DNA from: Chrysemys picta bellii
Taxonomy: Eukaryota
Assembly: GCF_011386835.1 (NCBI RefSeq)
Contig: NC_088803.1
Span: 42,842,001 to 42,906,000 of the forward strand
Reading direction: 5' to 3'
Length of the DNA stretch: 64,000 bases
The position numbers were made by a program, and so were the translations under genes. The notes beneath the pieces are model-generated. The model saw only the letters and a program-made list of their open reading frames with translations, ran no database searches and had not been told where the DNA came from. Positions 9,313 to 10,775 of this stretch are shown here, piece by piece. Within the stretch, counting starts at the first letter, position 1. Each line of letters opens with the position of its first letter.

Positions 9313-9426
9313 CTATAATTGCACAAAGTTTGTATACTCTTTCTTTTTACTGCTCAGGATGTTTTTATTAGTTCCCTGTGGAAGGCAGAGCACATGTGCC
9401 CACCTCTTGCAGGAGTCACACTGTGC
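9313..9426 (-). pseudogene. Unannotated PHD-finger gene or relic, last exon (second half of PHD)
   Basis: Strong acceptor ttttttccatctattatttttcaaag/; reads AQCDSCKRWAHVLCLPQGTNKNILSSKKKEYTNFVQL*. QCDxCxxWxHxxC is a PHD signature. Confidence 0.75.
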
Positions 9427-9770
9427 CTTTGAAAAATAATAGATGGAAAAAAATGACACTAATTGTGCAAAATATAATTTCCGTTAACTCAAAATTGTAA
9501 AATATTTATTGAACTTCTGCTGTGATTTTTAACTTTCTAGCTACGTATCCGTAGTCAAGATATGACTATCTGCTGCAGTTGAAGTATTTATTAATGTAGA
9601 ATTATTACCACAATCCCGATCCTTATCCAGGTTATTCCATCTGATCTATATGTATCTGTCTAGATACTGGGCCATAACTTCAGTTCATGGCACAGGAACA
9701 GATCATATTCTGTTTACTTACCTGCTCAAACATATGGCATGTGTTTCTAATACAATTTTGTGTTGCTTAC

Positions 9771-9833
9771 CATTATGCAATCTTTGTTTTCCTTCTTGCA
9801 TATGACAAGGTTGCAGCAGTAGACTTCTGTGCT
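9771..9833 (-). pseudogene. Unannotated PHD-finger gene or relic, exon encoding first half of PHD
   Basis: 63-nt exon, attttgcatag/ ... ATG/gtaagc; reads STEVYCCNLVICKKENKDCIM in phase 0 and joins directly to AQCDSC. Confidence 0.72.
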
Positions 9834-10108
9834 CTATGCAAAATCAATATAATTTAATCAAATGATTTCCTAATTCTGAAAACTAGAAATAGAAATAGAT
9901 TGATTAATGTCACTTATTTCAAGAACTACATTAATGATTTGCAAATATTTTCCTTTGGGGGGGGTCATATTTAAATAATATTTGGTACCCTTATCTATTT
10001 GTCTTAAACTGTTAGATTGTAGATATAACTATATCCTACTGTATTTCAATGCTCTTTTGGTTTCAATTTTTTTTTTTACTTTTCACTAATTAAACACAAT
10101 ATTCATAC

Positions 10109-10149
10109 AGAGAACCCAGTTTCTTTCATTAGGGTACCAAATTTGTGAC
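10109..10149 (-). pseudogene. Putative upstream exon of the PHD-finger gene
   Basis: 41 nt, aaatag/ ... /gtatga; (G)HKFGTLMKETGFS, phase 1 to 0, stop-free in the chain. Confidence 0.45.
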
Positions 10150-10236
10150 CTATTTTAATAAATGTAGTAAAATAACTAATGACATTCCACTCTTCCTGTT
10201 TACCTTCCCATATACTCTGACCTCACTTGGAATATA

Positions 10237-10390
10237 CACCTCTACCTCGATATAACGTTGTTCTCGGGAGCCAAAAAATCTTACTGTGTTATATCGAACT
10301 TGCTTTGATCCACCAGAGTGCGCAGTCCCTCCCCCCCAGCACTGCTTTACTGCGTTATATCCGAATTTGTGTTATATAGGGGTAGAGGTG
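10237..10390. mobile_element. Tc1/mariner-type MITE
   Basis: TA TSD; TIRs cacctctacc / ggtagaggtg; same family as the copy at 55948-56146. Confidence 0.85.
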
Positions 10391-10406
10391 TATAACAAAG
10401 CTATAC

Positions 10407-10491
10407 CTGACCTTTTTCCATTAAGATAATTGCTTTTTTCCCCCCTGTATATACATAGGATATCTTTATGTTCAAAATATGATTCTACAAG
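10407..10491 (-). pseudogene. Putative upstream exon of the PHD-finger gene
   Basis: 85 nt, cattag/ ... CAG/gtatag; LVESYFEHKDILCIYRGEKSNYLNGKRS, phase 0 to 1. Confidence 0.45.
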
Positions 10492-10688
10492 CTAATGCAT
10501 TTTTAAAATAGAAAACTCATAACTAAGTAGTAGTTTGACATTAACTACTTTTAGGATGAGTGGCCCAACAGTTGGGCCCAACCACTAGTATCTTGTGTTC
10601 CACAATTTTTGTTTTCCAGAATCATAGTAGATTTTTCCTCCACTGAGAAACTGGAAGAATCTAAACTATAAAATAGCCAATAGCTTAC

Positions 10689-10775
10689 TTCATAATTGGA
10701 TTTCATGTTTTCATAAAGTCACTCTCAATGTTTAGTAATGGTTTACTTTTTTTATTTAATGAATGTTTGGAATCA
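10689..10775 (-). pseudogene. Putative upstream exon of the PHD-finger gene with apparent 1-nt frameshift
   Basis: Donor GAA/gtaagc at 10689/10688; DSKHSLNKKSKPLLNIESDF, then YENMKSNYE in a shifted frame; in-frame ATG at 10706. Confidence 0.4.

Follow-up and report, generated by a model that had tools for sequence, protein, structure and literature searches.

A proposed PHD-finger gene in CSTF1 intron 1 of Chrysemys picta bellii is very probably a relic of a Ginger1-type DNA transposon

Does the DNA beside AURKA and CSTF1 in the turtle Chrysemys picta bellii hide a small gene for a chromatin reader? A first-pass annotation of the 64,000-nucleotide stretch of DNA analysed here (the window) had joined five short minus-strand segments into a spliced PHD-finger gene and placed it between AURKA and CSTF1. 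It suggested a single-copy host gene, lost in mammals or decaying in this turtle, and named a domesticated, intron-containing transposon with a PHD domain as an alternative. We find that the stretch is very probably a dead, 5'-truncated 3' fragment of a cut-and-paste DNA transposon of the Ginger1 type.

The proposed exons and CSTF1 intron 1

The five proposed segments (10706-10689, 10491-10407, 10149-10109, 9833-9771 and 9426-9313) are indeed present. Reading the minus strand of 9200-10800, we found AG before and GT after each of them. Joined by script, they give 321 nt that encode the quoted 106-aa product, ending in a stop, and this product has the C-x4-C-x11-C-x2-C-x4-H-x2-C spacing that was claimed. 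The location needs correction: the stretch is not between AURKA and CSTF1 but inside intron 1 of CSTF1 (Table 1), as contig splicing and the splice sites show. Exon 1 of CSTF1 is non-coding and ends at 8131 (AG/GTGAG; slashes mark splice junctions), exon 2 starts at 14069 (cag/GCACCC), and the ATG is at 14096. Contigs of four runs cover 8000-8132 and then continue with letters that uniquely match 14070-14096. (The CSTF1 sites were read at window 7900-8131 and 14069-14275.)

AURKA and CSTF1 lie head-to-head in the window, as they do in human, with a common GC-rich stretch (0.52 G+C in 4001-8000). We take 3710-4024 (-), recognised by eye from the ORF list, to be the N-terminal coding exon of AURKA.

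Table 1. Features discussed in the text, with window coordinates. The proposed exons are those of the first-pass annotation.
Feature	Coordinates	Strand	Remarks
CSTF1 intron 1 (5'-UTR intron, 5.9 kb)	8132..14068	+	carries the relic in antisense
Whole relic	about 9093..11086	-	very probably the 3'-terminal ~2 kb of a Ginger1-like element, 5'-truncated
Proposed exon 1	10689..10706	-	MKSNYE; ATG, then GT 18 nt later; homologue in no copy
Ulp1 exon relic (catalytic Cys exon; family WNSKIVHHPRQSDGHNCGPLILK)	10531..10618	-	inside proposed intron 1
exA relic = proposed exon 2	10407..10491	-	MAFFT alignment of seven copies
MITE, ~162 bp	10233..10394		24-nt terminal inverted repeats 10233-10256 / 10371-10394 (TATACACCTCTACC...)
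Proposed exon 3	10109..10149	-	exA-exB intron of other copies (alignment); P0007 splices exA straight to exB
exB relic = proposed exon 4	9771..9833	-	first half of PHD finger; alignment of 17 copies
Ancestral intron between the two PHD exons	9427..9770	-	GT and AG conserved across copies
exC relic = proposed exon 5	9313..9426	-	QCDSCKRWAHVLC (C3-C4-H-C6) kept; alignment of 16 copies

The five proposed exons differ in their support. Exons 2, 4 and 5 correspond by homology to exA, exB and exC, the final three exons of a multi-copy gene, and their acceptor and donor positions are conserved in 6-16 other copies; they are more than a chance finding. In contrast, exons 1 and 3 are unsupported. Exon 1 gave no match as an exon in any copy by tblastn or blastn. 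At exon 3, the window copy is about 10 bases longer than the other copies in the alignment. The only use of this 41-nt segment is to restore the reading phase after a 2-nt break, which came about when the ancestral acceptor of exB mutated: its AG has become AT (9837-9836), and the phase is shifted by a new AG that lies 2 nt downstream. By our own reading of the sequence, joining exA straight to exB at the new AG leads to a stop early in exC.

The relic of the true upstream exon is instead a piece of a Ulp1 protease exon (10618-10531). By tblastn it matches the exon of a young copy in two HSPs in different frames, and its motif has decayed. The spliced model P0007, described below, aligns to the window from 10578 onward.

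Most of the proposed 257-nt "intron 2" is a MITE, a repeat for which a first look at the genome gave 4102 candidates at 84-91% identity. We considered that it might split an ancestral exon and rejected this, as the seven-copy alignment places it within the intron that ancestrally separated exA from exB, 12 nt below the conserved exA donor. The depth of RNA-derived contigs is about 4600 at the MITE versus 12-40 alongside, and contigs break there. Another stretch, 12320-12778, was rejected as part of the relic: some copies have a match to it, but where this match falls with respect to the gene is inconsistent among them, and it is treated here as a separate repeat. Further away, ORFs at 57610-58348 (+) and 47598-48318 (-) (for example MKFNKEKCKVLHLGRKNQ...) resemble, and presumably are, C-terminal fragments of CR1-type LINE reverse transcriptases.

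The multi-copy family and its gene

The sequence is far from unique. A search of the genome with the DNA of window 9250-9900 gave at least 50 matches on many chromosomes, several of which span exon plus intron at 66-76% identity, and a protein search of the genome with the last ORF gave at least 40. The DNA match between the window and the copies is continuous across the PHD exon and the adjoining intron (9427-9770). Seven copies, on C3, C12 (three), C14, C16 and C17, are mutually 92-97% identical over kilobases.

The copy on C16 shows what lies upstream of the PHD exons on the same strand. It has a series of pieces separated by introns: one exon each for Integrase_H2C2 (55.9 bits) and rve (41.4 bits); a long ORF (L024:6186-7217) that is the C-terminal region of the integrase, with YRGPYKI (the GPY/F region); exons with the Ulp1 signatures WLSDEV, HTPGHWVLAV and QSDGHNCGP; and then exA, exB and exC. 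Among the older copies, those most similar to the window copy have the same colinear order (intN, rve, intC, ulpA, ulpB, ulpC, exA, PHD). Pfam gave no match to single Ulp1 exons of the C16 copy; the C48 domain was seen via P0007, a 350-aa spliced gene model that we found by an exhaustive HMMER search with the C-terminal ORF of the integrase. P0007 is 76-88% identical to the C16 exons, starts within the integrase C-terminal region, and has a Peptidase_C48 domain (49 bits) plus a terminal PHD finger; its exA stretch reads ...GPLILK/FAETYLQHKD...LLMKES/. The intact gene of this family is split by GT-AG introns. Its product is a Gypsy-like integrase (H2C2, DDE core and GPY/F) followed by a Ulp1/C48 cysteine-protease domain and, at the C-terminus, a C4HC3 PHD finger.

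Gene models of the family exist in Gopherus, Terrapene, Mauremys, Natator and Chrysemys. In the first four of these genera, several loci of the P0007 cluster carry the annotation "sentrin-specific protease 1-like" or "uncharacterized", and the closest match to the integrase C-terminal query, P0001, is from Chrysemys. The RefSeq "sentrin-specific protease 1-like" models P0007 and P0151-P0162 (several loci in Gopherus flavomarginatus and other turtles) start within the integrase C-terminal region and are transposase fragments of this family, not SENP1 paralogues. More distant relatives combine Integrase_H2C2 and rve with Peptidase_C48 or OTU, or with a terminal PHD.

We also looked for genes of a retrotransposon. 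The lack of RT (reverse transcriptase), gag and LTRs sets Ginger1 apart from Gypsy retrotransposons. Of the ORFs on the strand of the integrase in the 7 kb upstream of it, the ten longest gave no Pfam match to RT, RNase H or gag, which is a limited test. The integrase itself is interrupted by introns. P0039 and P0043 were dropped as RT probes; they are repetitive proteins without RT domains.

The annotation had held that many dispersed, TIR-flanked copies would make this a transposon. Dispersed copies are plentiful, and inverted-repeat ends were found on two long ones, C16 and C12b, which carry 136-bp inverted repeats. The outer ends of these two copies are TGTATCAGCAC... and ...GTGCTGATACA (TGT...ACA type), and a first look at the genome gave 577 candidates for the terminal 120 bp. 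The flanks of the two copies with both ends are ATGG/ACGG (C16) and GAGG/CCGG (C12b; here slashes separate the two sides). Across the family, 13 of the 14 readable 3' flanks begin with CC; they are mostly CCTG, CCGC or CCCC, not CCGG or CCGT. The C16 and C12b copies share about 21 kb, and the pair may be a segmental duplicate of a composite region.

Several features of the young Ginger1-like subfamily were seen along the way. Its members include C16:8190800-8208799 minus (L024 + L029), C12:27675500-27694675 (L023/L032/L017), and a copy on C17 (L025/L028); its elements span at least 16 kb and possibly about 21 kb. The inverted ends of this subfamily are long and composite, with tandem sub-repeats of about 58-70 bp. 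At C12:27693500-27695500 (L041, L017), the 3' end of C12b is followed by a tandem array of units of about 65 bp that runs for about 1.3 kb, versus only three ~65-bp units at the 3' end of the C16 copy. In the C16 copy, a Ulp1 exon contains at least one in-frame stop. A 605-aa ORF (starting TPTMAKRKIDSENRGFQSRWENEYMF...; L023:2451-4265 (+), C12:27677950-27679764) is nested in the C12b copy, while the copies on C16 and C17 lack it. Judged by eye, it resembles a hAT/Buster-type transposase, which we take to be an insertion.

Decay of the window copy and alternative explanations

Within the window, the relic is colinear with copies on C9, C3, C16, C4 and C12 at 66-74% identity (blastn). The exons of the family match only ulpC, exA and the PHD exon within window 5000-16000 (tblastn), and more distant full-length relatives, used as queries, gave no match to the window copy. 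The integrase, the N-terminal Ulp1 exons and a recognisable terminus are absent from it. The window copy is assigned to the family because it is homologous to longer copies, its own integrase and terminus being missing.

What is left has been damaged in each exon. The exA relic keeps the ancestral acceptor (TTAG/) and donor (TCAG/GTA) and, compared with six other copies, has lost 27 nt in frame (MAFFT alignment of seven). In exB, a 6-nt deletion has turned YCIYC (C-x2-C) into YCC, so the two residues between C1 and C2 are gone; all 16 of the other copies at this exon have TACTGCAT(A/G)TACTGC, and all have C-x2-C. In the tail of exC, where the family has EYNCKKCA and a stop (C7-x2-C8), the window has EYTNFVQL and a stop. 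This change, a 4-nt loss plus a 4-nt gain, removed the last two zinc ligands, C7 and C8. In run X1 (same species label, another sample), one contig has an extra C after 9342, inside the proposed last exon. This may be a polymorphic frameshift; it was seen in a single contig at a depth of about 12.

The damage shows in the profile scores. For a PHD finger, we relied on the Pfam family PF00628 (C4HC3, gathering score 24), with the pattern C-x2-C ... C-x2-C-x4-H-x2-C ... C-x2-C. The 106-aa peptide did give a PHD match, but at 21.8 bits (E 2e-4) this is under the gathering score, and with C1-C2 reduced to CC and C7 and C8 absent, the window peptide falls outside the PHD fingers. The last ORF alone (9313-9459, 48 aa) scores 21.6 bits, so the claimed first Cys pair contributes almost nothing. 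The intact exon of a young copy (C16) reaches 26.2 bits, over the gathering score, and P0094 reaches 32.1 bits. Other copies read ...EDYCIYCNLVNCEKESEDCTMV / QCDSCKRWAHMPCITEGTNQDYLTDEKKEYNCKKCA and then a stop, which is a complete C4HC3 finger ending at the stop codon. Because C7, C8 and the C1-C2 spacer are missing, the window copy cannot fold as a PHD finger.

This bears on the likeness to readers of H3K4me3 that the annotation had pointed out. Across copies, the three residues that it named (Tyr before C1, Met three before C3, Trp two before His) are retained, and the consensus of the family is Y-C-x2-C ... M-x-Q-C-D-S-C-x-R-W-x-H-x-P-C ... C-x2-C. The comparison is reasonable for the intact domain of the family, but it fails for the window copy, where two ligands and the C1-C2 spacing are gone.

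Could the fragment nevertheless do something for its host? That it was exapted, as an antisense transcript, a micro-ORF or a regulatory element in the first intron of CSTF1, is in our judgement improbable. The relic lies 1-3 kb from the bidirectional promoter of AURKA and CSTF1, in two runs unspliced contigs extend without a break across the entire intron at a low and fairly even depth, and near-identical DNA occurs in runs of two other species labels, which hold 24-44% of the 31-mers of the stretch. But the depth over the relic equals that over the remaining intron, in keeping with pre-mRNA or DNA carry-over; two other runs with strong cover of CSTF1 exon 1 have none over the relic apart from the MITE; and every exon has been hit by indels. 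The shared 31-mers fit an old insertion common to related species, and such sharing among close species is expected of any old neutral insertion. None of the proposed junctions (10689>10491, 10407>10149, 10109>9833 and 9771>9426) was found in the contigs of the four runs, which are assembled contigs only, from which rare spliced transcripts could escape. The annotation's alternative of an intron-containing PHD transposon was right as to the origin of the sequence, but there is no sign of domestication in a copy that is 5'-truncated, disabled and represented by no spliced contig.

It is less probable still that the relic is a pseudogene belonging to a host gene family with many copies ("SENP1-like" with a PHD finger), and that segmental duplication, not transposition, spread this family. 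The NCBI names of P0007 and its cluster across several turtle genera would fit a host family, as would the one 21-kb block shared by C16 and C12b and the unmatched flanks ATGG/ACGG and GAGG/CCGG. However, the same transcription unit begins with a Gypsy-like integrase, and P0007 itself begins inside the C-terminal region of that integrase. The inverted ends have hundreds of genomic matches, and truncation points differ among copies on many chromosomes.

Least credible of all is a genuine single-copy gene for a small PHD chromatin reader, transcribed leftward from the CpG island of CSTF1 and AURKA: it has on its side a stop-free chain of five segments with canonical splice sites and a sub-threshold PHD match, but the locus is multi-copy and sits in CSTF1 intron 1 instead of an intergenic region, two of the five exons have no homologue, C7 and C8 are missing and the C1-C2 spacing is damaged, there are no junction contigs, and the contig of one run has a 1-nt insertion after 9342, in the last exon. 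The idea of a single-copy host gene lost in mammals or decaying in this turtle is unsupported.

We return to the reading as a fragment of a Ginger1-type transposon. On the published Ginger1 model, the integrase of an active element would cut and paste the element at its TGT...ACA inverted ends, and the Ulp1 domain and the PHD finger would be accessory modules. Being of the H3K4me3-reading type, the PHD finger may tether the transposase to chromatin. The window copy would have landed, or have been truncated, in CSTF1 intron 1 in antisense and have decayed neutrally since. The proposed five-exon chain would then be made up of what remains of exA, exB and exC, with two chance segments spanning the damage, and would have no function of its own.

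The family belongs to a known superfamily, and the locus is an ordinary transposon relic. This disposes of a false lead, since no lost chromatin-reader gene lies beside AURKA and CSTF1. What is left is of modest interest for transposon biology, namely a Ginger1 lineage with integrase, Ulp1 and PHD that was active in turtles fairly recently. We would only tentatively suggest that this is a turtle-wide lineage, much younger and more complete than the "protein fossils" of amniotes, in which the PHD finger might steer integration to active promoters; for proximity to a promoter, this copy is a single data point.

Comparison with known systems

Ginger1 transposases combine an integrase (INT) with a Ulp1 or OTU domain and are encoded by genes with 1-4 GT-AG introns, and Ginger1-9_HM carries Ulp1 plus PHD (Bao, Kapitonov & Jurka 2010, PMC2836005). 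The turtle family shares with Ginger1, and especially with Ginger1-9_HM, a Gypsy-like integrase (H2C2, DDE and GPY/F) fused to a C-terminal Ulp1 (C48) domain and PHD finger, as well as GT-AG introns in the transposase gene and inverted repeats ending in TGT...ACA. The turtle copies differ in being at least 16 kb long, compared with 3-7 kb for Ginger1 of Hydra, and in having more introns. They also have long composite ends bearing tandem sub-repeats. Ginger1 makes a 4-bp target-site duplication of CCGG or CCGT; no such duplication was seen at the two turtle copies with both ends (flanks given above). The window, for its part, has only the last ~2 kb of such an element, in decayed form.

Among solved PHD fingers, the nearest by sequence to that of the family are those of Bye1, PHF20, EBS, KDM5B, Set3, CFP1, TAF3, PHF8 and PHF2; these matches are weak (E 1e-3 to 1), and the likeness is one of sequence alone. 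Most of these relatives (Bye1, TAF3, PHF2/8, KDM5B and CFP1) we take to be readers of H3K4me3. The nearest solved sequences mostly belong to the class of H3K4me3-reading PHD fingers, which includes KDM5B PHD3 and ING2.

Ginger1 relics have been reported in turtle (Frith 2022, PMC9004415), and our search of the literature found no paper that describes the turtle family beyond this report of relics. The Ginger1 protein fossils of amniotes and the genes GIN1 and GIN2 have in common with the window relic that they are Ginger1-derived sequence present in turtles, with integrase genes that bear introns. However, GIN1 and GIN2 are single-copy, conserved host genes, while the relic is one of many dispersed copies and has no integrase.

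Finally, Ulp1-carrying Mutator-like elements (cited in PMC2836005) also have a SUMO-protease-like C48 domain in a DNA transposon. These elements use a Mutator transposase, whereas the turtle family uses an integrase of the retroviral type.
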